From sequence record NC_061447.1: DNA of 64,000 bases. One strand, given 5' to 3'. A program made the position numbers and the translations under genes. Below are positions 19,889 through 58,521 of this stretch, piece after piece (the stretch's first letter is position 1; the number at the start of each line of letters is the position of its first letter). The notes under the pieces are model-generated. The model did not search any database and was not told the DNA's origin. It was given only the letters and a program-made list of their open reading frames with translations.

Positions 19889-20875
19889 TTAAAGTTTACG
19901 CAGACCTTTCTTGATTGCAGCATTAACTTGCGCGGCTGACGGGTCTTTCGTTGCGAACAGATCGATGACGTTCGTGATTGAGTCCAGTTCGCCGAGATGA
20001 ATCTGGACGTTCTGCACTTTCTTCAAGTGGTCAGCGATGAATGTCAGCACCCAGCCTTTCTGTTTCATAACGACAGATACTTCCAGATCCTTGTATGAGA
20101 AGGAGAACTGATTACCTGCAGCACGAAGCAATTTGGCCGCACCAGGAATCGGCTCAACAGCGCGAATAAACTCAGGCGCATATTGGCGGGCAGTCTTGTT
20201 GCGTAAGACAGAATAGGCAGGGTCAAACGTCCGCAGCTTGGTTTTAGCTTTAGGCTTAGACCCAGGAGTACCACCAGTCTGTTTCTGATCTGGGTTCTGT
20301 GTCCACGTCAGACCTTCATCCAGACAGTTCTGGCCGGTAATCGCTTCCTGAATGATGACACGCTTGTTCTTGCCTGTCTCCACGTTGGCTTCGGCTTCAT
20401 CTTCGGTCTTGAACGGACCTTTGATGATAATGTCGTTCGCGTGACGTGTGTGGTCGATGACGTACCACTTGTTGCGTTCGATCTTACCGTTAGCGTCAAC
20501 AGTGTTCGAGCGCACAGGGCGAGTCGTCTTAGCAGGAGCGTTCTGCTGGATAGCGACAGGCTTCATCTTGATTGCGCGAAGACCATTGATGGTAGCCACC
20601 AGCGTTTTGGCCTTATACAGGTTCTTCATCGCGGTGACCAGAGACTTACCAGCAGCTTTCTTGGCGAAGGCCGTAGTAGCATCTGCATCGTTCAGCAGGT
20701 CGAGCACAGCAGACAGCTTTGCAGTGTCCAGCTCTTTAATCTTCACCAGCTCGTCAATCTTCTTGACGATCAGTTTCGCGTTCTTGCCAAAGAGAATCTC
20801 GGCGTTAGCGATCTGCTTTTTATTTGCAGCAGAGACTGACACCACAGCGCCAGATGGGAGAGTGATTTCGTGCAT
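19889..20875 (-). CDS. Basic Lys/Ala-rich protein, probable virion or DNA-binding protein (328 aa)
   Basis: AAGG RBS; K/A-rich; N-terminus MHEITLPSGAVVSVSAA carries the S-x-S-A leader motif. Confidence 0.75.
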   Translation of the reverse strand: MHEITLPSGAVVSVSAANKKQIANAEILFGKNAKLIVKKIDELVKIKELDTAKLSAVLDLLNDADATTAFAKKAAGKSLVTAMKNLYKAKTLVATINGLRAIKMKPVAIQQNAPAKTTRPVRSNTVDANGKIERNKWYVIDHTRHANDIIIKGPFKTEDEAEANVETGKNKRVIIQEAITGQNCLDEGLTWTQNPDQKQTGGTPGSKPKAKTKLRTFDPAYSVLRNKTARQYAPEFIRAVEPIPGAAKLLRAAGNQFSFSYKDLEVSVVMKQKGWVLTFIADHLKKVQNVQIHLGELDSITNVIDLFATKDPSAAQVNAAIKKGLRKL

Positions 20876-20884
20876 TGCTGTTCC

Positions 20885-21436
20885 TTATCGTTTCTTAGTC
20901 CAGTTGTTCTGCTTAACTGGAGTTGGTGAAGTATTCTCTTCCGTGATGCCGTCTGCGTCGTCTTCTTCCTCTTCCTCGACGTCATCCACTTCTGGCTCAG
21001 GCTGTGCTTCCTGGACAGGTGTGGTGTTGAGTACAGACGCAGCGATTGGTGCCTGTGACACTGTGTTTACAGTAGCAACAGGCTCGGCTTCGGCAGCTTT
21101 ACGAGCTTCTGCCACTTCACCTACAGCGTGTGCATGAACGAGATCAGTAGTCAGCAGCGCACCCTTCTCTTTCAGGATTGCATCTGCTTTCTCTTGATCC
21201 CACTGATCCCAGATAATGTCCAGAGACTTAAAGCCCCAGTTCATGCCTTTCGGCAGCTTACCGCGACCGTTGAACGGCAGACCGTTTGAAGGAGTAGCTG
21301 GCTCGAACTCGTCCATCATCTCCCACTTACGTTTTGCCTCGATACACTTAGGTCCCCAGACGCCATCACACGCACCGTCATAGAGACCGAGCATGGTCAT
21401 GATGACCTGGAGCTTCTGATAGAACTTGTTCAGCAT
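20885..21436 (-). CDS. Protein with an N-terminal peptidoglycan-binding (PG_binding_1-like) domain and an acidic tail (183 aa)
   Basis: KLQVIMTMLGLYDGACDGVWGPKCIEAKRKWE fits LQ..L..LG.Y.G..DG.FG..T..A...FQ. No catalytic domain recognised. Confidence 0.65.
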   Translation of the reverse strand: MLNKFYQKLQVIMTMLGLYDGACDGVWGPKCIEAKRKWEMMDEFEPATPSNGLPFNGRGKLPKGMNWGFKSLDIIWDQWDQEKADAILKEKGALLTTDLVHAHAVGEVAEARKAAEAEPVATVNTVSQAPIAASVLNTTPVQEAQPEPEVDDVEEEEEDDADGITEENTSPTPVKQNNWTKKR

Positions 21437-21452
21437 GGTGAGTCCTCACATG

Positions 21453-21481
21453 AAAGGAGGGGCCGAAGCCCCTTACCTTTT
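21453..21481 (-). terminator. Intrinsic terminator after the SNF2 gene
   Basis: Minus strand AGGGGC-TTCG-GCCCCT within a longer AAAGG...CCTTT stem. Confidence 0.75.
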
Positions 21482-24400
21482 AGACTGATTTGTTTTTCGA
21501 CATGGTCAGTTTCAACTTGTCGAGCGCAGTAGTGACCTTCTTAATGTTCGTGATGTTGTAGCCTGCTTTCACGATCTTATTGATACGTGCTTTCGCAGTA
21601 GCCACATTCTTCACGAAGCCAATCCACATGCCAGGCGACAGGTCGAACGTACCGAACTTACGAGTGTTCGGGATTTTCGTACCGACGAAGCGTTTCATCT
21701 GCGGGTTGGTTTTCAGGTCGAACATAATACGCAGTCGGTCTTCCATGATCATCGGGTATGCCTTGACGTGTTTCTTATCAGAGGCAGACTTGTGTTTCAC
21801 GAGGAAGAACTTCGGCAGTTGCTCCTGACCTTTCGTAGCCAGTTTGACGTTGAAGCCCATACGCGGCGTAGACTCGTCGAAGAAGTCCAGTACGAACTCC
21901 AGACGTTTCTCGGATGGTTTGTCGAATGCCAGTTTCTTCTTAACCTCGATGAAGTCAAGCATGGCCTCGAAGTCCGAGTAGTACACGCAGTCGTAATAAA
22001 CGTAATCGCCGAACTCAACGAAGTCGAATGCCTTGAGTGCTTCTGCATCAGGGTCAGTCGCGTTCGCATACAGCGCAACGAATCCGTTATACACGGTAGG
22101 AGTCAGGTCCATCGCCATATCAGCACCAGTAGCTTCGGCCACAGCTTTAGCACCAGGCTTCATGCGAGTCGTGGTGTTAGCCAGAGGAGGCAGGTCTGCA
22201 ACCTTACGACGGCGAACTTTCTTGGCAGCTTCTTCAACACCTTCGTTGATTGGCTTACCAGTCTTTTTGTTCTCCACACGCTTGGCCACGCGAGCAGCTT
22301 TACGCTCTTGCGCTTCGACTTTCTTCTCTGTCTGCTTGGTGTCAGCCGTCTGCGTTTCATCAGCAACAGTGTCTTCGACTTCAACACGGTTAGCTTCGGC
22401 ATTAGCACGTTTGCGATCTTTCTCGTTCGCCCATGCCTTACGCGCCTCGAAGAAACGTTTCAGATCGTTCTTGTCTACCTTCGTAGCAATGTGAACTTTC
22501 GTCGCAGGAACTGCAACGGTTTCACCAGAGCCAGCCAGACGAACACGAACGGTACTGATAGGACTGTCACCACGCAGCTTACCATCGACCATACGAACAG
22601 TCACAGACACGACAACGCCGTTACCGAACTCAGTCACGACAGGTGCACGATTCAGAGAATCTTTCAGCCCTTCGCCGCTGGTGAAGTTACGGTTACGCGC
22701 CCAATCCAGAAGACGCTCAGTGCCCCAGCCGTTACGGTCTGGAATCTTCTGGTTCGCAACAAGCGGCGTCTGCTCCATCACACGGAAGTCAGTCAGAGCT
22801 GGCGTTGACGGCAGTGCTTGCATTGCAGCAATAGTCGTCTTACGCATCTCCTGGAACTCCTGCGATTCGATATCGTTAAGATCACGTTTCGCGAGGAAGT
22901 ATGGAGCAAAGTCTTCCATTGTGTTGTTGTCGATCAGCAGCTTCGCACTCATTTTGATTGGGTCCAGTTTATACTGGTCGAGTGCTTCGTAACGCTGGTT
23001 GCCTTTCTCGTCGAAGCGAGTCTTCTCCAGGGTCTTCCACATCAGACGTGCAACCTTACCAACTTCTAAGGTCTTGTTCGTCATAACCCAGTCGATGAAC
23101 ACAACTTCACGAGCCATGTCACCTGGCTTACCATTCTCGTCCAGCTTCGCCGCAGCAACGTCAGGACGGAAGATACGCGCAGTAGACTGGTCGTAGGTAC
23201 CAGGTGACCACGGAGTATCGCAGCGGATGATACGGCTACCCATCTGCATGTTGTGGCCTTCGGAGATCGCTTGTTCGTTCGCAATCAGAATCTGAACGTT
23301 CGGGTCAGTTTTGAAAGCGTCGAGGTTAGCGTCTTTGTTCTGGCCGAGCTTACCAACTTCACCGTGATACACTACAGCAACTTTCTTATAGTTGGCTGGC
23401 AGTGCATTGTAGATGGCGTTAGCAGCGCGAACATAACGAGTGAAGACAATCAGCTTGCCTTGCACCTCAGGCTTCCAGTAGTCTGGATCGTCTGGAGGTG
23501 GAACCATTGAAGGCGGCAGCGCTTGACGCTTGAACTCTTCGGACTGCTTACGTGCCAGATACTTCTGACCGTTGTAGACAGCAATGTCCAGTTCACGCGG
23601 CTCTACGCCAGGCTTCCATTCGAAGATCTGCTGTTCGCCGATCAGATGGTCACGCTCAGGCTGCACTTCGAAGTGCTTGCGAATACGGTCGATGATGGTC
23701 AACACTTTCGCAGAAACGAAGTTGGTAACGCCTGCGGCTTCAAACGTCAGACGAGCAACGTCATCACCCATAGGGTCAGTCAGCATCATTTCCATACGCT
23801 GGAAGTACATGTTCAGGTCAGCGTTACTCGCTAACAATGCACCCAGGTCATCGCCTTCTTCGATTTCGTCTTCGTCGATATCCGATGTGGAATCACCATC
23901 ACCACCAGCTTCGTCGTCATCGTCGTCGCCACCGCCACTTTTCTTCTTGGCGTTCTTGGCCGCTTCGTCCAGCTTCTCCAGAACTTCCGCGTACATTGCG
24001 TTGTACACTTCCTGGTGAAGCGCAGAGTTAGGCACTGACGGATCATCGATCTCAACCTGGATGAAGGTATCAATCGGGTTCGGCAGCATGAACGCCCAGT
24101 GCTTACGCTTGAACGAGATGAACGCCGTATGGTTAGCCATACGTGAGTGCGCACGACGAATCATTTCGATATCATCTTTCGCGCCATCATACGCAACGTC
24201 CAGTGAATCACCGAACATAGCAGGCGTCATCAGTGCAGCCTGACCAACGATATCACGCACACGGTCAGTTACCAGTGTACCAGTAGCGATACGTGCATAG
24301 CGAACGGACGGAGCAGTGAAGACCGCTTTGGTGTTGAAGTGAACCTGAGAGCCAGCCTGACCGCCAGAGAAGTTCTTCACTTTGTGGGACTCGTCGAGCA

Positions 24401-27326
24401 ACACATAGCTGAACTTGAAGCGGTTAACGAACTCAACAGCACCACGCACACGAACACGCACACCGCCGATATCAACGTTGAACGTACCAGTTTGCAGATA
24501 GCTCAGGCCGACGATGAAGATTGTGTTACGAGGTGACTGAGAGATCACATCGTACATGCGTTCTTCGCCCCACGTGTTCACGGTGTCAGCAGTAATTGGT
24601 ACTGCGTTCCAGCCATCAACGATTTTGTGGAGGTCGTCACACCAGTTCGCTACGAGGTTAGACGGACAGATGATCAGAGGACGAATGCCTTCTTCACCCA
24701 AGTCGTCCAGCTCTTTGATAGTAGCCGCGATATCAGTCAGGCCGATAATCGTTTTACCACCGCCAGGCGCGATAAAGATTGTTGCAAAGCGTGGACGACG
24801 ACGCAGAGTTTTGTGCGCTTCGACCTGATGCGGCAGTAATGCTGCACCATCTTTCAGACCAGGGATACGGATATCATCAATGGTGATACCGCTGTCTGGT
24901 TTCAGACGTTCAATCTCAGTCTCAGCCGATTCGAAAATCTCAAGAGACTTAGGAATCACATCGCTGTACATGGTAGCGAATGGCAGAATGATTTGTTGCA
25001 GACGGCCAGAGCCTGGAGCTTGATCAGATTCGATCAGAGAGCTAAACAGTTTCTTACGGTCAGCGCGAACCAGAGACTGTGCCATTTCACGATACAACGC
25101 ACCACCGAAGTAGTTGTTGAGGCGTGCCATGTCAGAAAGTTTGGACTTCTCACCCATTACGAAGTAGTGAGTGTGCGACGGCAGAGATTCGGTCGCGGCC
25201 ATGATGCTGCCCATCTCATTGAGAGAGGTTGCAATCAGGTTAGAACCACGCAGACCAGCAGCGTCGTTCATCACACGAATCATAATGCGCAGCATAGTCA
25301 GAGCAGGACGCTCGTTTGACATATCAGGCACTGAGAAGTCGTTGGCGATCAGGTTTTCGTACAGGCCGTTATCCATCGGGCTTTCGGACAGCGCAGCGTT
25401 CTCTGCATCCATACCGATAGCTTTACGCGCATTCTCCACCAGCGTTTTCAGGTCAGGAACTTGTTTGTTCTTGAGCATGAACTCGTAGGTCTGGCAGGTC
25501 TGTGCGATGATGTTCAGCAACTCGGGCAGATTAGAACCATCGGTGGAGTTGTACTTGATAGTGGATTCACTCACACTCTCAATCAACTTGCCTGAACCAG
25601 ATTCAACCTTAGCGGCTTCAATCATCGTGTCATACGACGGACGATACAGAGCCATACCACCAGACGCCTGATTGTGATAGATGTTACCAATCACGTTCGA
25701 GGCAGAACGGAAGTTAGGTGCTTCACCCGGCTCTGCGAAGTCGTAGCCTAAAGCATCTGCAACATCCAGAGAGTTAGGAGACTTCATGCCGACAGTACGA
25801 GTTTCGTTAACGGCCAGGCCGCCACCGTTTGAGGTGTTTACGATCAGCGAGAAGTCAGGGTCGATACCGATACACACATCGCTGAAACGCGACAGAGATT
25901 TCGACTTAGCCTGCACTTCACGGTCAAAGTCCAGATTGTTGTTCTGGATTGCGAACATGTTGGTACGCAGGGTGTCGTGCTCAGTAGACAACGGAATACC
26001 TTTTTCGAACAGGTCTTCGAGGACGGTGTTCAAGGTTGTTTCGTATGTCTTCACCATTTCGATATCAATATCTTCACGGCGAGGCAGCACAGCCATTGTA
26101 CCATTCGGCATGATAGTCATACCGTGCTCGTCAGCCACAACGTCGTTCACCACGTAGCCGAACTTCTCACGCAGCTTTTTCAGTTCAGGCAGCGTGGTAG
26201 CAGAGGTCACGTAACGAGGAATACGTGCAGCACGAGTGATACCAGTACGAGTTGAGTTAGCAACACGGAAGTAGTAGCTCGCCCAGCCCTGGAACCAACG
26301 ATACAGACACATGGCCTGAGTATCAGCGCCCTGAGAGATGTACTCAACCATCTCTTTTTCGAAGTTAACAATCAGGCCACCTTCAACGCGAACGTCGGTT
26401 GCCAGTGCTACTTCGTTGAACTCGACTGGAGTGTCGTGACTGATCTTCATCGCCTGGATCTTACGATCAATCATCGCTTTACCTGGGATAGAGCGAATGC
26501 CGATAGTCATGAAGTCACCAAGACCATCAACCACAGCTTTATCCAGATTGCGGAACAGATCGATATCAATCGTGTTCATCAGAGGATGGATAGAACGCAG
26601 AGCAGCGTTATACACAGACCAGTCTTTATCCAGAGGGATACGGATCATCTTGGTGTCGAACGCATTGCTGTTACTGCGGTCAACGCCGAAGATATCTTTG
26701 TAGATGGTCTTCGCCACACGAATAGCAGACTGCGCTACTTCGGAGCTGTAGGTACGCAGGTTAGCGCTTTCGAAGTTCGCGTCTTTATCAACACGAGGAC
26801 GGTCGCTACCCTGATTGTTCAGGACGTTGAAGTTACCGTTCGATGCCAGCGGACTAGTCGGGCACGGAGTACCAGACATGATGATATCTTTACCGCCAGG
26901 GAAGCGCGTACTGTTTTCGATGATCGCACCAGATGACGCAGACAGGTGTTCGGCCAGAGCGGTCTTAATCTCACGGCTCAGCTTGTCACCGTTCAACATC
27001 ATATTGATTTTCAGCGAGGACGCTTCGATGTTGTTTTTGATACGCTTAACGAAGTCATCAGGAGAGACCTCGATCATATCTTCGAACTCTGCACCGTTGA
27101 TAACGATGTAGTTGATCAGGTCGAATGCCGCATAGATGCGAGCAACGGTAGACGCCGTGAACACTGCGAGAGTTTCGTAGTTACGGCGCGACTTCCCTGT
27201 GGCATACATCTTCGCCGTTTTGGCGTCGAACTCGGGCGGCAACGGACGAACAGAAAGTGCCTGATTGAACGTATCGGCAATTTGCTGTGTCGCGGTTGCT
27301 GACATACTAATAATCTGATTCATCAT
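21480..27326 (-). CDS. Giant SNF2/SWI2-family helicase-like protein (1948 aa)
   Basis: LLPHQ, IAPGGGKT, IICPSNLVANW, LLDESH, ATGT, KLIVFTRY, AISEGHNMQ, DTPWSPGTYDQSTARIFR (SNF2 motifs I-VI), with about 800 aa of unassigned N-terminal sequence. Confidence 0.9.
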   Translation of the reverse strand: MMNQIISMSATATQQIADTFNQALSVRPLPPEFDAKTAKMYATGKSRRNYETLAVFTASTVARIYAAFDLINYIVINGAEFEDMIEVSPDDFVKRIKNNIEASSLKINMMLNGDKLSREIKTALAEHLSASSGAIIENSTRFPGGKDIIMSGTPCPTSPLASNGNFNVLNNQGSDRPRVDKDANFESANLRTYSSEVAQSAIRVAKTIYKDIFGVDRSNSNAFDTKMIRIPLDKDWSVYNAALRSIHPLMNTIDIDLFRNLDKAVVDGLGDFMTIGIRSIPGKAMIDRKIQAMKISHDTPVEFNEVALATDVRVEGGLIVNFEKEMVEYISQGADTQAMCLYRWFQGWASYYFRVANSTRTGITRAARIPRYVTSATTLPELKKLREKFGYVVNDVVADEHGMTIMPNGTMAVLPRREDIDIEMVKTYETTLNTVLEDLFEKGIPLSTEHDTLRTNMFAIQNNNLDFDREVQAKSKSLSRFSDVCIGIDPDFSLIVNTSNGGGLAVNETRTVGMKSPNSLDVADALGYDFAEPGEAPNFRSASNVIGNIYHNQASGGMALYRPSYDTMIEAAKVESGSGKLIESVSESTIKYNSTDGSNLPELLNIIAQTCQTYEFMLKNKQVPDLKTLVENARKAIGMDAENAALSESPMDNGLYENLIANDFSVPDMSNERPALTMLRIMIRVMNDAAGLRGSNLIATSLNEMGSIMAATESLPSHTHYFVMGEKSKLSDMARLNNYFGGALYREMAQSLVRADRKKLFSSLIESDQAPGSGRLQQIILPFATMYSDVIPKSLEIFESAETEIERLKPDSGITIDDIRIPGLKDGAALLPHQVEAHKTLRRRPRFATIFIAPGGGKTIIGLTDIAATIKELDDLGEEGIRPLIICPSNLVANWCDDLHKIVDGWNAVPITADTVNTWGEERMYDVISQSPRNTIFIVGLSYLQTGTFNVDIGGVRVRVRGAVEFVNRFKFSYVLLDESHKVKNFSGGQAGSQVHFNTKAVFTAPSVRYARIATGTLVTDRVRDIVGQAALMTPAMFGDSLDVAYDGAKDDIEMIRRAHSRMANHTAFISFKRKHWAFMLPNPIDTFIQVEIDDPSVPNSALHQEVYNAMYAEVLEKLDEAAKNAKKKSGGGDDDDDEAGGDGDSTSDIDEDEIEEGDDLGALLASNADLNMYFQRMEMMLTDPMGDDVARLTFEAAGVTNFVSAKVLTIIDRIRKHFEVQPERDHLIGEQQIFEWKPGVEPRELDIAVYNGQKYLARKQSEEFKRQALPPSMVPPPDDPDYWKPEVQGKLIVFTRYVRAANAIYNALPANYKKVAVVYHGEVGKLGQNKDANLDAFKTDPNVQILIANEQAISEGHNMQMGSRIIRCDTPWSPGTYDQSTARIFRPDVAAAKLDENGKPGDMAREVVFIDWVMTNKTLEVGKVARLMWKTLEKTRFDEKGNQRYEALDQYKLDPIKMSAKLLIDNNTMEDFAPYFLAKRDLNDIESQEFQEMRKTTIAAMQALPSTPALTDFRVMEQTPLVANQKIPDRNGWGTERLLDWARNRNFTSGEGLKDSLNRAPVVTEFGNGVVVSVTVRMVDGKLRGDSPISTVRVRLAGSGETVAVPATKVHIATKVDKNDLKRFFEARKAWANEKDRKRANAEANRVEVEDTVADETQTADTKQTEKKVEAQERKAARVAKRVENKKTGKPINEGVEEAAKKVRRRKVADLPPLANTTTRMKPGAKAVAEATGADMAMDLTPTVYNGFVALYANATDPDAEALKAFDFVEFGDYVYYDCVYYSDFEAMLDFIEVKKKLAFDKPSEKRLEFVLDFFDESTPRMGFNVKLATKGQEQLPKFFLVKHKSASDKKHVKAYPMIMEDRLRIMFDLKTNPQMKRFVGTKIPNTRKFGTFDLSPGMWIGFVKNVATAKARINKIVKAGYNITNIKKVTTALDKLKLTMSKNKSV

Positions 27327-30684: not shown

Positions 30685-30730
30685 TGTCATCTCCTGAATG
30701 TTTCGACAATTGAAATTAGTAAACTTAGGG

Positions 30731-33002: not shown

Positions 33003-34285
33003 TACTTGACCGATTGTTTCAGCAGACGTTTCTGTTGTGGGTTCAGACCCATAACGTCGGCGATTTCATCAATCTTACGCAGGGTCAGAACGCCTTTCGC
33101 AGTACCGCCAGAACCAGTCAGAGAGATCTTAACGAACTCACGGCCGTTACGGCCATTGACCATCTGGTGAACGATGCTGTTCTTACCACCACGTCCCGCA
33201 CGAAGCGCAGTAGACGCCATGCCCAGAATCTCTGTGATAGCTTCTTTCTTCTCGGTCGGACTAAGACCAGGAACCAGACGCACATACAGGCTATCGTTCT
33301 GCACACGAACGTTGTCGAAGATTTCTTTCTTACGACCACGAATGGTGTGCTGCTGATTACCCAGCATGGTGGTGTCACGCAGGTTCTGCGTAGAACGGTT
33401 GATAGGCTTACGCTCGCTGTAGTTCAAGAATCCGTCGAGAGCCATCAGATGGTTGATAGTACGCTTCATCTCAGGAGCGGTAGCGATCTGACGTCCCATA
33501 GGGAACGAGCCAGGAACTTTCTCGTCAACGAGTGACGTCAGGAAGTTTTCGCTGATACCGCTTGCTACTGCGATTGTGGTAGACAGTACCAGAGCATAGT
33601 TCGGGTAGTGCATACCATCGGAGTTCACGAAGTTATCAATGAACACGTAGGTCTGGAAACAGATTGGGTCAGTACCAGACGCGATGAAAGTACGAGTACG
33701 AATCTTCGAATAGTCTTCTTTATTCAGAATCTTCGACAGGTAGTTGGCGATGGTTGCAGCCAGCTTGGTATGCTCTTTAGGCGCGCCGTTTTTAACGTCG
33801 ATGCTCATGAGCTTAACCAGTTTTTGCTGCTGGTCTTTCGCCTGAGTGATAACGTTCAGCAGAGACTTAGCGGCTGCGTTCTGATCTTTGAATGCGCTGA
33901 AAGTCTTACTGTTCAGAATCTGGTACGCGACCGACAGTTCACCAATCGCCTGAGACAGTTGGCTTACCTGTTGGTTGTATTGAGCTTTGCTCTTAACATC
34001 AGAGATATCAATCTTGGTCAGATCGATAACTTGGTTAAGGTCGATAGCCTTGGCCTGTTTGCCTTTGATTGAGCCTTCGATATCAGACAGTTCGATGGCT
34101 TTAGCGCTGACGGACAGGAGTTTCTGTGGGATGACTACTGAGGTGGCGTTAGCGATAACTTTATCGAGTACGTTACGGAACTCTTTCGCTGTACGCGCAC
34201 CACGTAATGCAGTCATATTCCCAGAGCTATAGTCAACAGATGCGCTGATACTGCTAACTTCATTGTTTTTGGCAGTCTTAGCCAT
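33002..34285 (-). CDS. Probable virion/internal head protein (about 427 aa)
   Basis: GAGG RBS favours MAKTAK; N-terminal EVSSISAS (S-x-S-A); CTAATTTT motif upstream. Confidence 0.75.
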   Translation of the reverse strand: MAKTAKNNEVSSISASVDYSSGNMTALRGARTAKEFRNVLDKVIANATSVVIPQKLLSVSAKAIELSDIEGSIKGKQAKAIDLNQVIDLTKIDISDVKSKAQYNQQVSQLSQAIGELSVAYQILNSKTFSAFKDQNAAAKSLLNVITQAKDQQQKLVKLMSIDVKNGAPKEHTKLAATIANYLSKILNKEDYSKIRTRTFIASGTDPICFQTYVFIDNFVNSDGMHYPNYALVLSTTIAVASGISENFLTSLVDEKVPGSFPMGRQIATAPEMKRTINHLMALDGFLNYSERKPINRSTQNLRDTTMLGNQQHTIRGRKKEIFDNVRVQNDSLYVRLVPGLSPTEKKEAITEILGMASTALRAGRGGKNSIVHQMVNGRNGREFVKISLTGSGGTAKGVLTLRKIDEIADVMGLNPQQKRLLKQSVK

Positions 34286-34369
34286 GATCATCCTCTACTG
34301 GGTCTAGTAATCATATCGAGTAAAAATTAGCGACTAAGGCCTGTTTTACCCTACATGATTGCTTTACAT

Positions 34370-36277
34370 TTAATTGGTTGCGTGATCGAGATAGTTGAGA
34401 ACAATAGCTTTCTCAATAGCATTAATTGCCGCGGAATATGCCTCTGCGTCAAGCTGGTCTTTGACGTAAAACGCAACGAAACCAGACGAGTCAGCGATCT
34501 TGTCCACAAACGTCAAGCCTACATCAGCAATAACGTTGGAGTTAATTACATCCGAGGCAGTGATGCCTTTCTCCATTTGGAATCTGTTAGCATTCACTTT
34601 TCTGAATGTCTTCTTGTCGAAGCCATGAGTATCAGCCACTATTCTGTTTGTCAGGCGCATGCCTAGATGAATCTTAATAGGAGTCAGGCCGTCAAATATA
34701 GGCAGTGCATATTCAGTGTAATCAGGGCGAACAACATCATCACAGGCCTTTAACGATTTGGCTGTCAATGCTTCAATTTTATCTTTGTCTCGAACGGCGA
34801 AGTACAGAGACACAAGCGCGGCCACAAGATTTTCTTTGCTGTAGCGGCTATTCATGTCCTCAAGTACCGACTCTACGGTACCGCCATTGAAACCTACATA
34901 CGAAGCCTGTCGCCAGAACACACCATCAGAATCTGAAAAATATTTTGCCTTATCCCAAATCTCACGCAGTGCGTCAGGATATCCACCCTCACTTCCATCC
35001 TTTTTAGAATACAGGGCAATCGTATCAAGGGATTGAGTAACGCGGTCAGTCATGCTCTCATCCTCACTCTCGACAAAACCAAGAAGAGGTATAGCTAGGC
35101 CTGGGTTGAAGCCCACCAGCTCGGCCTGCTCCAGCAACTGACTATCTGACAGATTGTTAGAGGCGTAGTCGAGATAGGCTTTCTTGATCTGAGAGTACAC
35201 ACTAGGGCTTTCAAAAGCCTCCATATGTGCAACTGCTTTGGTGACCTTAGACAGCAGGTCATCGCCGCCCCAACCAGAAGCGAGGACTTTACTCACAAAC
35301 GAGAAGAACTCTTTCGACATGTTAGCGATATTGTTGCCGAGTCGGTCCGTATATTCCGTAGCAGTAATCTTCGACAAATAGCCATCAGGATCATTACGCA
35401 CTTCTTGACGCATACGCAGTTCTGCGTAGGACGCCTCGTTGTTTTCAGCGGCAGTCTTAGATGCATCATACTTAAACATGCCACGCTGCATATCGTCATA
35501 CAACTTGTCAGGCAGCGCGAGACTTAACGTAGTTTTACCGGCAGCAAGGTCTTTATTGATATTCTGGTCAACCCAGTCCTGAACCTGCATTACAAACGTG
35601 GCGTTCTTATCTGGGTACGCACGGTCTGCAAGATATACGACAGTAACGCCTTTCTTGCCAACACTCGGTCTAACAGCATCGACGTCAAAGAAAGGTTTCA
35701 ACAGGCAGCGAGCAACAGGCTTGTTGATATTCTTGTCGTTAGCGTCAATAAGATATGCTATTAAAGTGCCTGTCTTCACTTCTGATTTGATGTAGTGTTT
35801 GTTCGTGCCGTTGACCAGGTTCATACAGCTCACCCAACCACGGTCAGTAGACATGCCTGCAATATCGTATGGGTGCATTGACAGACACACCATGCGACCA
35901 CTCTTACCTTCTTGCGCTACAACTTTACGATTAGGGTCAGAGTCGAACATCTTCTTGAGTTCGGCTTCTTTGGCAAGAGCTTTACCTAAACGCACAGTAC
36001 GCCCGTGAGAATCACGACCGATACCTGCAAAATAATCCAGTACAGTGATTTTCTTTTCGGCAAGAAAATCGTTGATAGGCTGCGGTGCAGTGGACAACAC
36101 ATCGGCGTTCTTAATGACGTTATGGCCGATATCGAAATAAATGCGCATTGCCTTGCGGCCGGTCTTACCGCTTATGCGCTCGAAGATTTTTAAGAGCGCT
36201 TTGTTTGGCTTCCAGTTCTTCAAGTACGGTCGATATTGTGAAGGAGCCAGGGCAGACAAGCTAACCTGTATTTCCAT
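34370..36277 (-). CDS. Large protein with an MEIQVSLS leader and an HPYDIAGMSTDRGWVSCM domain (635 aa)
   Basis: ORF is clear. The S-C-M-containing segment looks like a conserved enzymatic core, possibly PcfJ/GNAT-like (weak recollection). Confidence 0.75.
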   Translation of the reverse strand: MEIQVSLSALAPSQYRPYLKNWKPNKALLKIFERISGKTGRKAMRIYFDIGHNVIKNADVLSTAPQPINDFLAEKKITVLDYFAGIGRDSHGRTVRLGKALAKEAELKKMFDSDPNRKVVAQEGKSGRMVCLSMHPYDIAGMSTDRGWVSCMNLVNGTNKHYIKSEVKTGTLIAYLIDANDKNINKPVARCLLKPFFDVDAVRPSVGKKGVTVVYLADRAYPDKNATFVMQVQDWVDQNINKDLAAGKTTLSLALPDKLYDDMQRGMFKYDASKTAAENNEASYAELRMRQEVRNDPDGYLSKITATEYTDRLGNNIANMSKEFFSFVSKVLASGWGGDDLLSKVTKAVAHMEAFESPSVYSQIKKAYLDYASNNLSDSQLLEQAELVGFNPGLAIPLLGFVESEDESMTDRVTQSLDTIALYSKKDGSEGGYPDALREIWDKAKYFSDSDGVFWRQASYVGFNGGTVESVLEDMNSRYSKENLVAALVSLYFAVRDKDKIEALTAKSLKACDDVVRPDYTEYALPIFDGLTPIKIHLGMRLTNRIVADTHGFDKKTFRKVNANRFQMEKGITASDVINSNVIADVGLTFVDKIADSSGFVAFYVKDQLDAEAYSAAINAIEKAIVLNYLDHATN

Positions 36278-36305: not shown

Positions 36306-36314
36306 AAAAATTAG
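36306..36314 (-). promoter_or_regulatory. [C/A]TAATTT[T/C] motif (representative; also near 5232, 7681, 11633, 30712, 34322, 37116, 43011, 43914, 49888, 59663)
   Basis: Recurs 20-70 nt upstream of mostly virion-type genes, often just after a terminator. Confidence 0.6.
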
Positions 36315-40029: not shown

Positions 40030-40539
40030 TCATTCCTTAATCATTTTGACACGCGTGTGATCAAAGATGCCGAAGGTAGGAACATCGTGGTGCTCACCTT
40101 CATTGCCTTTGATTGAGTCGTACCCAGCTAGTTTGAGTATCTTGCTGATCTCGGTATACTCGTCCCACCACATATAGACTCGCTTGTACTGCGAGGCAGG
40201 TATGAGGTTATTCAGCGCGTCTAACCTTTTAACGAGAGTCATCGCCTCATCTTTGCCAACCAGATGCAACTGGAAGGCTTCCATGATAAGTTGCTTCACT
40301 CGTCTATGAATCTCAGCGAACTTTACTTCCGTCCACAGAGAACGGAACTTCAAGGTAGCATAGCGACCAGGGTCCGCATGAAATTTGTAGAGGCGCCCAC
40401 CCTCCGCATACAGTTCAGCATACGCACGATCTGGAGTTACCCAAGTCATGTGCTGCTTCTTCGCATGATCATCAGACCAGTCTTCTGCAAGACCGCGATA
40501 GTAGATGGTGGGCGCACTCAGACTAACAAAGATCTGCAT
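40030..40539 (-). CDS. ADP-ribosyltransferase-like protein with an MQIFVSLS leader (169 aa)
   Basis: YYRG...TWVTPDRAYAELYA..GGRLYKF...AGYDSI...TFGIFDHTRVK follows the ART-fold pattern seen in phage/polyvalent-protein ART domains. Confidence 0.55.
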   Translation of the reverse strand: MQIFVSLSAPTIYYRGLAEDWSDDHAKKQHMTWVTPDRAYAELYAEGGRLYKFHADPGRYATLKFRSLWTEVKFAEIHRRVKQLIMEAFQLHLVGKDEAMTLVKRLDALNNLIPASQYKRVYMWWDEYTEISKILKLAGYDSIKGNEGEHHDVPTFGIFDHTRVKMIKE

Positions 40540-41474: not shown

Positions 41475-42074
41475 CTAGGGTCGCCCAGGCACATCGAAGT
41501 TCTTACCTGCCGAGTAATCACCCAGCGCCTGGTACAAAGAGTCACGCAGCATACGCTGAATGATATCCGAGTTGTGTGCTGAGGCATCTTTGAATGCAAC
41601 CTCAATCGCTTCTGTTCTTGGATTCAATACAGCGTAACGCAGTGGGCAGATAACCTGCGCATTGCACCATGCGTCGATCTTGATTTGAAGATCTGGCGTG
41701 ATTGGAATGCGGAAGTCAGCGAGCTGGAACACAACGCTCTGAATAGGAGGTGGCGACGAGAGCGACATGAATTTGCCGTTCTTGTTCAAACGCTCCATAG
41801 CGTTGGCTGCTTCATAGATCGTCTGATAACCCTCACTGACTGTCGTGATGTTAGTCAACTTGAAGCTATGCGTTGTCAAGCCTTTGCGAATTAGCTTGGC
41901 GATCTTGAGTTCATAATCACCAGAATCATCGCGCATGAAAGTGACAAACGCGTAGAAGGCGAAACCATCTTCTTCGCGTAAAAGTTTGTGATCTAATACG
42001 CGAAAGCCCACGACACTTTGCAGTGCCTGGGCTGTGATTTGCGTCGCCTGTGATAGGGAGACGTAGATTTCCAT
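41475..42074 (-). CDS. Hypothetical protein with an MEIYVSLS leader (199 aa)
   Basis: Coupled start (TAATG). Confidence 0.75.
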   Translation of the reverse strand: MEIYVSLSQATQITAQALQSVVGFRVLDHKLLREEDGFAFYAFVTFMRDDSGDYELKIAKLIRKGLTTHSFKLTNITTVSEGYQTIYEAANAMERLNKNGKFMSLSSPPPIQSVVFQLADFRIPITPDLQIKIDAWCNAQVICPLRYAVLNPRTEAIEVAFKDASAHNSDIIQRMLRDSLYQALGDYSAGKNFDVPGRP

Positions 42075-42984: not shown

Positions 42985-43020
42985 AGATATAGCCCTCTTT
43001 TAGACAGGTTAAAATTATCG

Positions 43021-43866: not shown

Positions 43867-43934
43867 GGTTTCCACCTCAGGTAGATTAAGGATAATGTGC
43901 TACGCCTTAGTCTAAAATTAGCTGCGGAAATGAC

Positions 43935-48435: not shown

Positions 48436-48463
48436 AAAAAGAAGGGCCACCGTTAGGCAGCCC
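48436..48463 (-). terminator. Intrinsic terminator
   Basis: Minus strand GGGCTGCC-TAAC-GGTGGCCC-TTCTTTTT. Confidence 0.75.
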
Positions 48464-48737
48464 CTGCGAACACTTTGCGCACACCATTATCCAGGTAGTG
48501 GTCTCCATAGAACGGACCATCAACATTTTCAAGACCAATACGCCGACGTAGCTGTCTGTGCAAGCGCTTAGGCCATACCAGTTCATCATCTATCAGATGA
48601 ATAACAGCAGGCATTGCTTCACGTTGGTCCATCATCAGGCCACGAATCTTCGCGTCAATCTTACAAAGTTCGGCGTAGTCCTGTTCTGGAGTTGGTACGT
48701 TGCACACAGGCTTAGAAAGATCTACGGTGAGTTCCAT
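48453..48737 (-). CDS. Hypothetical protein (94 aa)
   Basis: GAGG RBS, coupled start. Confidence 0.6.
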   Translation of the reverse strand: MELTVDLSKPVCNVPTPEQDYAELCKIDAKIRGLMMDQREAMPAVIHLIDDELVWPKRLHRQLRRRIGLENVDGPFYGDHYLDNGVRKVFAGAA

Positions 48738-49186
48738 CAGTACCTCCGTGGTTTCTTAGGCTTCTTAGGCCTTGTGGATTTAGGACGCTTGATACGCTGT
48801 AACGCTTTACGCGCTTCGGCGATCTGACCAGACAATGCTGCGCGTTGTTTCTTCGTCGCGTCAGTATCTTGGTCTGTGCCTTTCAGTTTCTCAAGACGGT
48901 TCCATTCTTTCACCAAACGATCAACGACAGCAGCACGGCTCACACGTTGTTGGTTGGTGCGAACGATATCCTGCTGGGTCTTTACCGAACGTTGAGTGTC
49001 CTGCACTTTCTTACGTGCGGCCTCAACACCTCGTGTATCTCCCTCGGATTGTTTGTCGTTCAGTTCTTTACGCGCCGCATTACTTCTGCGTTGCGCACCT
49101 TTGAGATCGTCACGCGAGTTTTCTAAACTCACTTTGGTATCTTCGAGTGGGCTAGAGCGCACACTCAAACTGACCATGATTTCCAT
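48737..49186 (-). CDS. Basic coiled-coil protein with an MEIMVSLS leader (149 aa)
   Basis: Start moved to ATG 49186 behind GGAG; the longer track ORF runs through a terminator. Confidence 0.75.
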   Translation of the reverse strand: MEIMVSLSVRSSPLEDTKVSLENSRDDLKGAQRRSNAARKELNDKQSEGDTRGVEAARKKVQDTQRSVKTQQDIVRTNQQRVSRAAVVDRLVKEWNRLEKLKGTDQDTDATKKQRAALSGQIAEARKALQRIKRPKSTRPKKPKKPRRY

Positions 49187-49316: not shown

Positions 49317-49853
49317 TCATGCTGATTGAAGGTCGAGAATTTCCTCGTCTTCGATATCAGCGGCAGACCACGAACGAATCACGGACGCATTACCGCGGTT
49401 GCCTGTCAGCATCATCTTAACAGATGGCTTGGCATCGCGCTCTGCGTAGTGGTCGATAAGAGCTTTCTCTGAACCGAACCACATAATGGAGTGACCACCT
49501 TTAGGGCAGATCAAGAATTGAGCAGGACGCTGCGGTACGTTGAGCGTCATGTACAGATCACCGACGCCGTTAGGACCTAACATAGGCATCGGCTTCATGA
49601 TTTGGGCAAAGTCAGTAGCATCTTTAAGACGCTTATCGCCTAACAACCAGAGAGCACCTTCTTCGCCTTCACGCACGGCAGACAGTGTGCCCTTGCGAGT
49701 AGTGATTGAACCAAAGGTGTCTTGATCGAAGCGGGCCAGACCAAAGATAAGCGATGCGAGCTTCTTCAGGTCAGGGGTCGTGCATGGGCTATCAATTTGT
49801 GCCATGCCCTCAGACCCAAGTGTAATCTTCGAGAGTGATACAAAGATTTCCAT
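49317..49853 (-). CDS. Hypothetical protein with an MEIFVSLS leader (178 aa)
   Basis: CTAATTTT motif about 35 nt upstream. Confidence 0.75.
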   Translation of the reverse strand: MEIFVSLSKITLGSEGMAQIDSPCTTPDLKKLASLIFGLARFDQDTFGSITTRKGTLSAVREGEEGALWLLGDKRLKDATDFAQIMKPMPMLGPNGVGDLYMTLNVPQRPAQFLICPKGGHSIMWFGSEKALIDHYAERDAKPSVKMMLTGNRGNASVIRSWSAADIEDEEILDLQSA

Positions 49854-49918
49854 TATTGTCTTCCAGCGCTATTGTGAATTGTGGATTAAAATTAGCGTTG
49901 AGTCAGACATTTCTGAAA

Positions 49919-54541: not shown

Positions 54542-54552
54542 AACGGCCTTTA

Positions 54553-55071: not shown

Positions 55072-55078
55072 TGTAACC

Positions 55079-55273: not shown

Positions 55274-55312
55274 ATATTAATCCTCTATGTTGATTGCTGT
55301 TAGTTTACAGTA

Positions 55313-55837: not shown

Positions 55838-55840
55838 ACT

Positions 55841-57457
55841 TTACTCCGAGAATATCTTTTTATCAGAAAACTTCTTGAGTACAAACTCGGCGTGGTTGCT
55901 CGTTACGGTGTCTCCTTCAACGCAGAGCAATGCGCCATCGTGCTCAAGAGAATACACACCCTTGACGTTAGGGCAGTTAAGAATCGCATCGAAAAGAAAA
56001 TAACTCTCCCACCCAGAAAGCATGTGGTTGAGAACGCGCTTCTTAATCTTCTTGTCCGTATCGTCAGGATCAGGATCATAGTTCGATCCCGTTGCACACT
56101 GGAGAACGCCGTATTCTGGCCTCCGTGCATTTTTATTTTTTCGGAACTTGGAACGATACACACCAAGCAGATCAGTGATGGCGAAATACAGAGGCGTCAT
56201 CCTCGTATTCCAATCCAATATCTCCTCTTTCACTTTCGAGACAGGCATGAAGCGAGCAAGTTCCTTAAAGACGTTGCTGTACTTCGTTGTTTCAAGTTGA
56301 CCTGCTGAGAAGATTGTACCGTATAAACAAACTTTTGCTGCACGTCTGTCCAATTTCATTATGCGACTGATATCATCAACGGAGCTTACCGTATCAAACA
56401 TCGCACACTCAATTCCGTAAGCGCCAAACTCTTTACGCAACACGTTGAACTGGCTGGACTTCATATCCCAGTTAGTGCCAATCGTGTAACATTGCTCTTT
56501 CAGGTCTGACGGTAAGTTCTGGAACCCACCACCAACTTCGAACAGTCGTCCGCCAATTTGCGACAGCCTATATTTAGGCCAATAACGAATGACAAGAGGT
56601 TTCTCGCTAACGATCTGAACAGGCCCCGACACAATAGTATCGAGCAACGTCTTAACCTGCAGGTACTGCTTCTTCGCCTTGTGATTAGCAATCAAGGACC
56701 TGTCTTCTAAATAAGCGAGGATAGGTTCGATGTTCACCTCATTCGGCATCAGCTTGTCAAGTACCTTACGATAAAGAGCACGGCCTTTAAGTTCCTTACC
56801 GTTACCCCTGTCACGATTTCGATCAAGCGAGCTAAGATCGTGCGTAGGGCGTTTGAACGGCAGCTTAGAATTTTTCTGAATCTGCGACCACACCGTTACC
56901 CCGTAATCCTCTCTCAAAATTTTAAGAGGGCTATAGAATCGAATGCGGTACAAAATATCGTAATGAGACTGCGGCTTAAAATGCCCGTACATCCCGTCTA
57001 AGATTTCAGGACGCATCCTAAACTCTCGACTAAGGCCCTTTTTCTTATCGTACGGTTTCGTTTCAAACACGTTAGCCATCAGCCAATCAAGGGATCTACT
57101 AAACGTGCCTTTCTTCGACTTGGCATATCGCCCTACAGCCACATTATCACCGCCCCTTTGATGACCGAACACCATAGGTAGCTTTTCTTTGCCCAATGAG
57201 CTTGGAAACGGCACCCAGACCCGTCCAAACTTCTTCTTTTTGTGTTTACGTGCAGGATAAAGGCTGCATTGAAGAATGTGCCAGAAGAATAAGTTCAATT
57301 GAGCACGGAACTCACGTTGTTCAGCATCAGGCCCCTCGTACGGGCAAGCGTTTATAACGTTGTCTCGCACCCAAATAACGACTTCCTTCTCCTGGTACGA
57401 GGGATTCGTGACGAGCACGGGCCCCTGACCGGAAACGATTCGTTTTTTCATGTTCAC
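55841..57457 (-). CDS. Divergent family A polymerase-like protein (TV-Pol-like; candidate primase/initiator) (538 aa)
   Basis: GRLFEVGGGFQNLP, motif A-like WDMKSSQF, motif B-like RRAAKVCLYG, NHMLSGWES and motif C-like LEHDGALL, in the order of the family A palm/fingers. No exonuclease domain. Confidence 0.65.
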   Translation of the reverse strand: MNMKKRIVSGQGPVLVTNPSYQEKEVVIWVRDNVINACPYEGPDAEQREFRAQLNLFFWHILQCSLYPARKHKKKKFGRVWVPFPSSLGKEKLPMVFGHQRGGDNVAVGRYAKSKKGTFSRSLDWLMANVFETKPYDKKKGLSREFRMRPEILDGMYGHFKPQSHYDILYRIRFYSPLKILREDYGVTVWSQIQKNSKLPFKRPTHDLSSLDRNRDRGNGKELKGRALYRKVLDKLMPNEVNIEPILAYLEDRSLIANHKAKKQYLQVKTLLDTIVSGPVQIVSEKPLVIRYWPKYRLSQIGGRLFEVGGGFQNLPSDLKEQCYTIGTNWDMKSSQFNVLRKEFGAYGIECAMFDTVSSVDDISRIMKLDRRAAKVCLYGTIFSAGQLETTKYSNVFKELARFMPVSKVKEEILDWNTRMTPLYFAITDLLGVYRSKFRKNKNARRPEYGVLQCATGSNYDPDPDDTDKKIKKRVLNHMLSGWESYFLFDAILNCPNVKGVYSLEHDGALLCVEGDTVTSNHAEFVLKKFSDKKIFSE

Positions 57458-57517
57458 ATCATGATTACCTGATTTTTCTATCGTTTCTTTACAGAATCAG
57501 ACAACTCTTAACTCCGA

Positions 57518-57620
57518 ATGCTACAGCTGGAAGCTACAACAGCTAGGCATGGAAGGCATGGGCTACAGCGGGCTAGCTACAACGCTCGTGGTACGCTTGA
57601 ACATTACAACTACAGGTACA
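57518..57620. repeat. Cluster of short imperfect direct repeats (GCTACA x4, GGCATGG x2, TACA)
   Basis: GCTACA at 57520, 57533, 57562 and 57576; GGCATGG at 57546 and 57555. Confidence 0.6.
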
Positions 57621-57677
57621 TCTTTAGGCGGCACGTTTCGGAGACATAGAAAATAAAGAAACCATGCTCCGAGCAGC

Positions 57678-57860
57678 CTAGATTGCACCCTCTACGCACC
57701 CTGGGTAGCGATCTAGCGGAAAACCCTAGGTCGTCTAAACCGTGTAAATTTTTCCAAAAAAGTAGTGCATTTTTTGACCAAATGCCCCTTTTCAGACTAA
57801 AAATGAGGAAAATCCGAGAAAAATCAAGGACTTTCCCCCAATTTTGAAACGAAAAATCAG
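57678..57860. other. Inverted repeat plus phased A/T tracts (origin- or packaging-site-like)
   Basis: CTAGATTGC-ACCC...GGGT-A-GCGATCTAG at 57678-57716, followed by A4-6/T4-6 runs spaced about 9-11 nt apart from 57749 to 57870. Confidence 0.4.
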
Positions 57861-57861
57861 A

Positions 57862-58521
57862 TCATTTTTTCTGTGAAACGCGTTTTCCGAGCTTAACACC
57901 GATTTGCGTCAGTATTCGCTTGACCGTTTCGCCGTCATGTTCAGCCATAGCAGCAGCTAAACGCTCGCCCTGTTCACGCGATAGCTCAGGCATGACCATT
58001 TTAAGCATCTGCGAGCGCATTTTTGCAGACTTTGATTTGCCTTTCGACACCGATACGCCTTCGTTAGCTGTGAGCGCACTGCTAATCGCTTTCTGCACAC
58101 GACGATCACCGAAGATATCGCCGAATACGTCACCGAACAGGTCTTTGAACGATAGACCACCGCTCATAATGTCGTTTTTCGTGAAACGAACAGGCTGTCC
58201 GAGCGCATTCACTTTATTGCAATGCACAGATTCAACCTGATTCGTGGTACGGCCACCAGCACGGAAGTTCTCGTCAGGGCGTGACGCTTTACCCTCTGCG
58301 CCTGGCTTAGTGTTGCCGTTGCGTAAATCAGGGTTACCTTCGACAGCTTTATCAGGGTCGAACATGTCGTCGGCTGTTTCGCTTTGATTCGCGTCAAACG
58401 GAATCTTACCCGTCAGCTTGTTGGGATCTGGCCAGCTATCTGGAATGTCAGAAGCAGGCTGTGGCTTATTGGTCATATCCCCATTTGCTTCACTGCTCAA
58501 GCTGATCTTAATACGAGTCAT
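57862..58521 (-). CDS. Probable virion/head protein with an MTRIKISLS leader (219 aa)
   Basis: AGGAG RBS; low-complexity acidic N-half, helical C-half. Confidence 0.75.
   Translation of the reverse strand: MTRIKISLSSEANGDMTNKPQPASDIPDSWPDPNKLTGKIPFDANQSETADDMFDPDKAVEGNPDLRNGNTKPGAEGKASRPDENFRAGGRTTNQVESVHCNKVNALGQPVRFTKNDIMSGGLSFKDLFGDVFGDIFGDRRVQKAISSALTANEGVSVSKGKSKSAKMRSQMLKMVMPELSREQGERLAAAMAEHDGETVKRILTQIGVKLGKRVSQKK

Follow-up and report, generated by a model that had tools for sequence, protein, structure and literature searches.

The Erwinia phage pEa_SNUABM_33 (SNU33, NC_061447.1), a jumbo phage of the genus Alexandravirus with a genome of 263,237 bp, starts several otherwise unrelated proteins with the same octapeptide, referred to here as the tag. 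We analysed a stretch of 64,000 nucleotides of this genome (the window, in which a position equals the record position minus 124,000) and found the core tag M-[EQ]-I-x-V-S-L-S at the N-terminus of gp187, gp193, gp195, gp207 and gp208. The tag is selected as a peptide, is modular, occurs across the lineage and changes in parallel with motifs in the head proteins. In its general form, M-[EQK]-hydrophobic-x-hydrophobic-small-x-small, it is probably a detachable N-terminal leader that targets proteins to the phage head. The best-supported interpretation of the sequences is that of a cleavable leader analogous to the capsid targeting sequence of T4, with a small-x-small code in place of x-x-Glu. 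The searchable literature holds no description of the tag and no paper containing the tag strings.

SNU33 is placed in a clade of jumbo phages together with PaBG, Lu11, AD1, the JA phages, Y3 and Yoloswag. The comparison covered the whole of SNU33, Dickeya phage JA29 (Salmondvirus) and Pseudomonas phage PaBG, parts of Lu11, and IMG/VR and metagenomic relatives. Capsid protein identity to SNU33 is 72% for JA29 and 46% for Lu11. Import into a phage nucleus was also considered as a role for the tag. The SNU33 annotation lists neither a nucleus-shell gene nor a tubulin gene, and a review of jumbo phages, which assigns Lu11 and PaBG to subgroup 2.2, ties nucleus-like compartments to group 1.

A six-frame scan of the whole SNU33 genome finds the tight pattern at seven annotated gene starts, with gp231 and gp240 outside the window in addition to the five genes above, and at no position inside any real gene. 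A looser pattern adds three starts, those of the Nudix gene gp122 (MMINVSLSA), gp206 (MELTVDLSK) and gp219. Expected N-terminal counts were derived from the internal frequency of each motif in the 340 annotated SNU33 proteins. Within the first 20 residues VSLS is observed 8 times against 0.27 expected (p = 5e-10) and hydrophobic-S-x-S 32 times against 9.9 expected (p = 2e-8), trivial MSxS starts making up 5 of the 32. For the control motifs T-x-T, A-x-A and S-x-E, the same residues and proteins give no enrichment at the N-terminus. Across the core tag the serines are encoded by AGC, AGT, TCA, TCC, TCT and TCG and the leucines by TTG, CTG, CTA, CTC and CTT, and the valine codons likewise vary from gene to gene. 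Because these codons differ between genes, it is the peptide and not the DNA that is conserved.

Past the tag the proteins are unrelated. Among them are a Nudix hydrolase, a protein of 635 residues, a coiled-coil-like basic protein and two low-complexity proteins of high charge; one tagged protein is acidic and disordered. Pfam and PHROGs give no function for the tagged window proteins, which match group-specific PHROGs only. A sequence-only reading of the window had listed eleven N-termini on the minus strand and proposed that they carry one shared signal for head packaging. All eleven translate as quoted and where it had placed them, with the RefSeq start of gp178 one codon earlier (27326), and both the lack of similarity past the leader and the N-terminal excess agree with that proposal. 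The idea of one leader holds for the five genes with the octapeptide; at least three leader types had been pooled, and the other six N-termini are looser. The proposed cut before a small residue was not borne out, the residue that follows S-L-S in the core tags being A, Q, K, V or H and not conserved.

JA29 has 9-10 tagged genes, both orthologues and other genes, and its tags include MEIEVSLSA, MEILVSISA, MQIFVSLSN, MQVLISLSK, MELLISLSK, MQIVFSLSK and MHVLISLSA. In Lu11 a stretch of 49 kb contains 12 or more genes that start M-[KR]-I-[QM]-L-A-[VTLI]-A (of the type M-K-I-Q-L-A-V-A), among them topoisomerase I, ADP-ribosyltransferase (ART)-like genes and three gp187 paralogues, and here the Ala codons of the tag vary. 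Since the Lu11 tag ends A-V-A, what is shared is a small-x-small code, of which S-x-S is one form. The hydrophobic-S-x-S code of the sequence-only reading is thus too narrow as worded, while its distinction from the T4 and phiKZ codes stands. The metagenomic contig L063 (265 kb) carries seven consecutive tagged genes, including those for a SprT-like peptidase, a protein with a weak lethal-factor-like peptidase match, two ART-PolyVal proteins and two gp187 paralogues. Four genes are tagged on contig L064 (172 kb), one of them Acb1-like. The latter contig, JAEHJW030015009.1, is part of a deposited genome assembly (NCBI GCA_016276955.3) and looks like a phage of the PaBG/Lu11/Alexandra lineage; it also encodes a 1896-residue SNF2 protein, a family-A DNA polymerase and a tagged gp187 homologue.

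Several comparisons indicate that the tag is an add-on. The Nudix protein gp122 of SNU33 has a 14-residue tagged extension that is absent from the two PaBG Nudix homologues, whose first residues already belong to the domain, and the Lu11 ART-like proteins 0200, 0202 and 0206 have about 10 extra, tagged residues compared to untagged JA29 homologues. The tag is also found on intrinsically disordered proteins. The phage-specific topoisomerase I is tagged in Lu11 (MNVHIAVA; Lu11_0197, L062 14605-16290), and its PaBG counterpart gp84 (record 56209-57897), which adjoins the head module, starts MHTSLSA. This combination of a tag and a tag-like start suggests that a DNA topoisomerase may be packaged. 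The statement that the recognised replication enzymes are without the leader is true locally and does not extend to this topoisomerase.

The family of gp187, with 116 homologues, offers a view of the same boundary under two leader types. The conserved domain begins AL(K)PSQYR and in gp187 this start (AL.PSQYR) directly follows the tag. Upstream of it 63 of the 116 members have a leader of 8-12 residues ending S-x-S, while 32 have a leader of 8-21 residues ending hydrophobic-x-Glu, the type of site cut by T4 gp21, as in MRYKEFAIE↓, MRAHEFLE↓ and MKLQELFE↓ (an arrow marks the end of a leader or the proposed cut). The homologue of Agrobacterium phage Atu_ph07 reads MQYTDLIE↓ALKPSEYR and that of Lu11 MRIQLAVA↓AVPLSIARPYVKGW. 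Cultured carriers of the family are Atu_ph07 and RsoM2USA with its relatives, the leader having been read in Atu_ph07 only; RsoM2USA has a gp21-type protease by annotation, and one x-x-E member adjoins T4 gp13-like and gp15-like neck genes. These boundary data suggest that phages with a T4-type protease show a T4-type cleavable leader at the position where the SNU33 lineage shows S-x-S or A-x-A.

The N-terminal domain of gp187 was modelled with AlphaFold from 62 sequences, with a mean predicted local distance difference test (pLDDT) score of 86; residues 1-6 score below 50 and are left disordered, and the first helix starts at residue 12. A fold search with this model gave no significant PDB match, the best E being 0.09 with weak hints of a GNAT-like fold, and a BFVD search returned uncharacterised phage proteins only. 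A domain that is widespread but restricted to phages makes up the first ~260 residues of gp187; its H135-P-Y-D...W148..C151 is invariant. Paralogues of gp187 number three in Lu11, two in JA29 and two in L063, and their C-terminal parts vary.

The small-x-small element is also present at conserved positions in head proteins, where it changes together with the tag. The protease gp145, encoded outside the window, has S-[EAKTR]-S↓F at its N-terminus in 8 of 9 relatives and A-L-G↓F in Lu11; in SNU33 the motif is S-E-S and ends at residue 9. The capsid protein reads LS[QES]S↓TGE in 6 of 6 relatives including PaBG, and LSSA↓TGE in Lu11. Among the many S-x-S sites of the acidic scaffold-like protein gp143, the first conserved site is QS[QE]S↓S and becomes VAVA↓S in Lu11, and the C-terminal site is ES[QE]S↓S, replaced by EATA↓S in PaBG and by VAVA↓S in Lu11. 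The A-V-A at these Lu11 sites is the exact end of the Lu11 tag. gp145 matches PHROG 18299, 'head maturation protease', at 1.8e-125, and according to the literature jumbo phages of groups 1 and 2, Lu11 and PaBG included, use S77 peptidases.

Three further features of the head module were observed. Directly downstream of the prohead protease gene lies gp144 (L005 9559-10689, record 107559-108689, outside the window), which has a KMPT-N domain (PF20294, 4e-27) and an HExxH metallopeptidase-like motif and, judged from these matches, would be a second peptidase in the module. A beta-1,4-glycosyltransferase gene is found within the head module of SNU33 (gp148), JA29 (gp137), PaBG (gp223) and Lu11 (0074), and its conservation in all four is a hint that virion proteins may be glycosylated. 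In PaBG the second gene upstream of that for the prohead protease seems to have its start before the annotated one (record 179714 onward); its longer form has a tag-like start, MLLSLSLA in PaBG, MLVSLSLA in a relative and MFISIAWA in Lu11 (also L056 7017 onward and L065 446 onward).

The remaining leaders of the window are longer or looser. Those of gp194 and gp196 follow M-x-LIK-[IL]-N-[IL]...S-E-S-A-A, while those of gp176, gp178 and gp186 have in common only an S-x-S(-A) near the N-terminus. S-x-S(-A) is kept in the JA29 orthologues of these proteins and its middle residue changes. For gp178, IISMS↓A in SNU33 compares to IFSTS↓A in JA29 (MQIFSTS↓A) and to MGSLFTLNSLS↓AA in PaBG, whose SNF2 protein begins MGSLFTLNSLSAA. 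For gp176, which is paralogous to gp249 (leader MSLIKIEGVASTS↓A), VVSVS↓A compares to VDSVS↓A, and the JA29 orthologue MTTISLKVDSVS↓AT retains S-V-S-A. S-A-S is conserved in gp186, with ISAS↓VDY in SNU33 and LSAS↓VDY in JA29 (MKTSTNEAQLSAS↓VDY), and gp194 and gp196 have SES↓AA in SNU33 and STS↓A in JA29. Leaders in relatives are MSLIKINLAEFAVSES↓A (L029) and MKVTLDLSAEIQSTS↓AA (JA29) for gp194, and MTLIKLNLDESVASTS↓A (L025) and MIVEIDLSVEQQSTS↓A (JA29) for gp196. We regard gp219 as a weaker member because the N-terminus of its JA29 orthologue is not alike.

At the SNF2 gene gp178 two ATGs are adjacent, at 27326 (RefSeq, MMNQ) and at 27323 (the start used in the sequence-only reading); neither is favoured by a clear ribosome-binding site, and there is a 4-nucleotide (nt) overlap with the upstream gene. 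Outside the window, gp104, gp105 and gp110, which are annotated as tail-fibre or virion proteins, start MPIIKIN, MSLTKIN and MSLIKVK (record 65144-66443 and 72124-72756) and resemble the long-variant leader MSLIKLN of gp196 and gp194. By this resemblance, the long-variant N-terminus may serve incorporation into the tail as well as into the head.

PaBG links the variant leaders to the virion. Its virion was studied by gel and MALDI-TOF analysis, which identified 14 proteins. Band 1 is gp202 (221 kDa), the homologue of gp178, and the virion proteins also include gp83, the N-terminus of which, MLIKINLLEAVA↓A, is like the gp194 and gp196 leaders of the long variant. That study also reported proteolytic processing of head proteins, the capsid protein losing ~20% of its mass at unmapped sites.

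The tagged genes are arranged along with structural genes behind a short DNA element, TAATTT, as had been remarked for several of the leader genes and as we found for gp186, gp187 and gp208 (Table 1). The SNU33 genome has 47 copies on both strands, 27 of which lie 29-59 nt upstream of a coding-strand start, and the element is usually preceded by C/G and then C/G/A. Behind it stand, for the most part, virion genes (those for sheath, baseplate and scaffold-like proteins), together with the endolysin gene, gp186, gp187 and gp208, and all tagged genes sit downstream of a TAATTT within the same-strand gene string. From its position the element is probably a late promoter element that is read with the phage's own sigma factor gp241, and this arrangement fits a late co-expression of the tagged genes with the head genes.

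The identities of the tagged proteins, as far as they can be assigned, are of interest. gp178 scores 27.9 bits against PF00176 (SNF2-rel_dom, cut-off 24.9) and 30.6 bits against PF00271 (Helicase_C, cut-off 23.5), and these profile matches confirm the SNF2-type helicase that the sequence-only reading had recognised. gp193 gives a weak hhalign match in a comparison with an ART-PolyVal profile (probability 25%, E 7.7e-4) and a BLASTP match at E 0.039 to an ART-PolyVal member of L063, with no Pfam match, to PF18760 or otherwise, at E <= 1; the ART-like protein of the sequence-only reading is thus a candidate at this strength. The ART-PolyVal proteins of L063 are tagged and have homologues in JA29 (gp192) and Lu11 (0205). 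In relatives the tagged proteins include topoisomerase I as well as Nudix, ART-PolyVal, Acb1-like and SprT-like proteins, and SNU33 itself has a tagged Nudix protein (gp122). By analogy, this candidate cargo fits the known injected phage effectors, namely ART-PolyVal, SprT-like, ATLF-like, Acb1-like and SNF2 proteins.

Table 1. Leaders of SNU33 proteins and TAATTT elements in the window (window positions; an arrow marks the end of the leader)
Feature	Position	Strand	Details
gp187 core tag MEIQVSLS	36254..36277	-	gene 34370-36277, 635 aa; founder of 116-member family
gp193 core tag MQIFVSLS	40516..40539	-	gene 40030-40539, 169 aa; possibly ADP-ribosyltransferase-like
gp195 core tag MEIYVSLS	42051..42074	-	gene 41475-42074, 199 aa; JA29 orthologue MEILVSISA
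gp207 core tag MEIMVSLS	49163..49186	-	gene 48737-49186, 149 aa, basic, coiled-coil-like; JA29 orthologue MQVLISLSK
gp208 core tag MEIFVSLS	49830..49853	-	gene 49317-49853, 178 aa; JA29 orthologue MQIVFSLSK
gp206 variant tag MELTVDLS	48714..48737	-	gene 48453-48737, 94 aa; absent from the sequence-only reading
gp219 variant tag MTRIKISLS	58495..58521	-	gene 57862-58521, 219 aa
gp178 N-terminus MMNQIISMS↓A	27300..27326	-	gene 21480-27326, 1948-aa SNF2-type helicase
gp176 long leader MHEITLPSGAVVSVS↓AA	20831..20875	-	gene 19889-20875
gp186 leader MAKTAKNNEVSSISAS↓VDY	34238..34285	-	gene 33002-34285, adjoins head-tail connector gene
gp194 long-variant leader MALIKINIADSLLSES↓AA	41412..41459	-	gene 40539-41459, basic, Ala/Lys-rich
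gp196 long-variant leader MSLIKLNLKEAVKSES↓AA	42362..42409	-	gene 42074-42409, 111 aa, acidic
TAATTT before gp187	36308..36313	-	36 nt upstream
TAATTT before gp186	34324-34329	-	44 nt upstream
TAATTT before gp208	49889-49894	-	41 nt upstream
TAATTT before endolysin gp197	43012-43017	-	
TAATTT before gp198	43915-43920	-	
TAATTT before gp183	30713-30718	-	
TAATTT before gp220	59664-59669	-	

We infer a course of docking, cleavage at the S-x-S bond and injection. Late in infection, the leader would dock otherwise unrelated proteins onto the core of the assembling prohead. A divergent prohead protease of the T4 gp21 type, gp145, would then cut after the second small residue, and would do likewise at the small-x-small motif that recurs in the capsid protein, the portal, the scaffold-like protein and its own N-terminus. 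The mature cargo would stay in the head and enter the host with the DNA. Here and in relatives this cargo would comprise the SNF2 helicase, gp187-family, ADP-ribosyltransferase-like, Nudix, Acb1-like and SprT-like proteins, topoisomerase I, and small basic or acidic proteins. Leaders of the longer kind, both MxLIKINL...SESAA and those found on gp176, gp178 and gp186, would be variants with this cleavage element at their end. The head-targeting and cleavage leader put forward in the sequence-only reading is supported in this form at the level of sequence, and is favoured by the behaviour of the tag as an add-on, the gp187 boundary, the parallel change in Lu11 and the virion homologues in PaBG.

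A number of observations weigh against this interpretation. S-x-S occurs 393 times internally in the SNU33 proteome and carries little information. Averaged over the head proteins, the serines of S-x-S are conserved at 51% and other serines at 42%; this gain in bulk is small, so that the argument from head proteins rests on a handful of well-conserved sites. The conserved capsid site at residue 35 would remove ~10% of the protein compared to the ~20% reported in PaBG. PaBG is without the exact core tag MEIxVSLS, and none of its 14 gel-identified bands carries it. The split between S-x-S and x-x-E leaders also tracks the phylogeny of the gp187 family itself. gp145 has no Pfam match even at E <= 10 and no PDB sequence match, which leaves its protease family unconfirmed, and its AlphaFold model from 9 sequences, with a pLDDT of 46, is too poor for a fold search. 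The literature offers no virion proteome or N-terminal sequencing for SNU33 or its genus, nor an open virion proteome for Alexandravirus, Y3 or Lu11, and the preprint on Matilda contains nothing on processing.

It is conceivable, though we think it unlikely, that the tag is an uncleaved docking peptide for the head (or the tail), for example an amphipathic beta-strand added to a sheet of the scaffold, portal or a chaperone, and that the S-x-S of the head proteins is unrelated to it. The alternation of hydrophobic and polar residues in I-x-V-S-L-S, I-K-I-N-I and V-T-L-D-L-S is beta-strand-like, the residue past the tag is not conserved, and an MSLIKIN-like start is also present on the tail-fibre-annotated gp104, gp105 and gp110. 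Such a peptide leaves unexplained why the tag and the capsid, protease and scaffold-like sites switch jointly from S-L-S to A-V-A, and why a gp21-type site stands at the same boundary in the T4-related homologues of gp187. Alternatively the tag might have nothing to do with the capsid and be an N-terminal degron, a handle by which a host or phage AAA+ unfoldase or protease would time when effectors are destroyed, or one for a phage chaperone or translocase, which we consider improbable. Short N-terminal peptides can act as ClpX/ClpA signals, and many of the tagged proteins are enzymes of a host-takeover type that could equally act inside the cell. According to the jumbo-phage review, phages of the PaBG/Lu11 subgroup can encode ClpA/ClpX or BCS1-like ATPases. 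Opposed to this are the physical presence of homologues of two variant-leader proteins in PaBG virions, the location of the tagged genes downstream of late-promoter-like elements along with structural genes, and the same motif at conserved positions in the capsid protein and at the protease N-terminus.

The serines raise the question of a post-translational modification site, either for O-glycosylation by the glycosyltransferase of the head module, whose gene SNU33, JA29, PaBG and Lu11 all have there, or for phosphorylation. This seems very improbable given that Lu11 has Ala/Gly in place of the serines at the tag and at the head sites, so that the hydroxyl acceptor is lost and small side chains are kept; the fixed position of the motif at residues 6-8 also argues for a leader. 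We give least credence of all to a feature of the nucleic acid or of translation, whether a 5' coding element that boosts initiation or the remnant, left by recombination, of the 5' end of one gene. Starts of the type M-E-I and M-K-I, in which the second codon is GAA or AAA, generally favour translation, and several of the tagged genes are clustered. The Ser and Leu codons vary within the tag, as do the Ala codons in Lu11, no DNA repeat is involved, and the peptide persists between genera whose capsid proteins are 45-72% identical; a signal at the level of DNA or translation was rejected on this codon diversity. A Sec signal peptide, which has a positively charged n-region and a hydrophobic core of 7-15 residues, was rejected as well on length and charge: the tag comprises eight residues in all, its second residue is acidic or neutral, and a hydrophobic core is lacking; the small-x-small rule of signal peptidase I (-3, -1) is the sole feature it has in common with the tag.

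With the cleavable leader as the preferred interpretation, we hypothesize that the PaBG/Lu11/Alexandra lineage combines a portable tag with a gp21-type protease shifted from Glu to a small-residue, herpesvirus-like specificity, and that it thereby loads a changeable arsenal of separate enzymes for co-injection. This arsenal would consist of anti-defence and takeover enzymes, namely ADP-ribosyltransferases, an Acb1-like phosphodiesterase, the SNF2 helicase, topoisomerase I, Nudix proteins and metallopeptidases, as a form of unbundled polyvalent proteins. We see about an even chance that this hypothesis is correct as a whole. If true, the injected proteome of such phages could be listed from the genome alone, including the anti-defence enzymes needed before phage genes are expressed. 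It would also add a second case of the T4 targeting principle, independent of the first, and show protease specificity and cargo tags evolving jointly, the residue at the cut passing from Glu through Ser to Ala. The eight-residue tag is a possible tool for packaging foreign proteins into large capsids, and since the phages concerned are under development against fire blight and soft rot, knowledge of their injected content would be useful for their characterisation.

The closest known system is that of T4. In IPIII of T4, according to a review, the first 10 residues are sufficient for targeting to the head, after which gp21 removes them; Alt loses 7 residues, and gp21 has a site of the cleavage-logo type that ends at its own residue 9. 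Like the tag, the T4 capsid targeting sequence (10 residues in IPI, IPII and IPIII, a 7-residue propeptide in Alt) is a short N-terminal peptide on unrelated, fast-evolving proteins, and the site of gp21 near its residue 9 has a parallel in the S-E-S at residue 9 of SNU33 gp145. T4 injects host-takeover and anti-defence cargo that includes an ADP-ribosyltransferase, as is proposed here, and gp187 homologues in T4-related jumbo phages bear T4-tag-like leaders at the same boundary. The sequence of the tag itself is unrelated, its last residue being Ser or Ala with a small residue at -2, and not Glu after Leu or Ile. None of the core tags has the hydrophobic-x-Glu end of T4, and only distant gp187 homologues have ...F-x-x-E or L-I-E. 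The cargo of SNU33 moreover includes a very large enzyme, the 1948-residue SNF2 protein, and the lineage is a different one, the PaBG/Lu11/Alexandra jumbo phages.

phiKZ and SPN3US resemble the proposed system in having many processed internal or ejection proteins, a gp21-type protease and a small P3 residue, and differ in that their P1 is Glu (here Ser, Ala or Gly) and that their propeptides are long and dissimilar, compared to one shared octapeptide. No core tag has Glu at its last position, as the phiKZ-type S/A/G-x-Glu motif would require. The sites of herpesvirus assemblin (V/L-x-A↓S) have a small P1 and a hydrophobic residue upstream. In the literature the phage S77-type protease is placed in the same serine-protease superfamily as assemblin, and a link of gp145 to this superfamily is unconfirmed here; assemblin sites lie in the scaffold and the protease, unlike a portable N-terminal tag on cargo. 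In Firmicutes, the cysteine protease Prp removes an N-terminal extension from the capsid and scaffold proteins of the staphylococcal phage 80alpha and from ribosomal protein L27. The long variant M-x-L-I-K-[IL]-N-L resembles the ...L-K-L-N-L-Q-F-F-A of this system as a short shared N-terminal peptide, a likeness that we take as a lead only. Finally, the polyvalent proteins, large multidomain effectors that phages and conjugative elements inject, have the same repertoire of ART-PolyVal, SNF2 helicase and SprT-like or lethal-factor-like metallopeptidase domains, with the difference that these domains are fused there into one polyprotein, while in the lineage of SNU33 they are separate proteins, each with its own tag.

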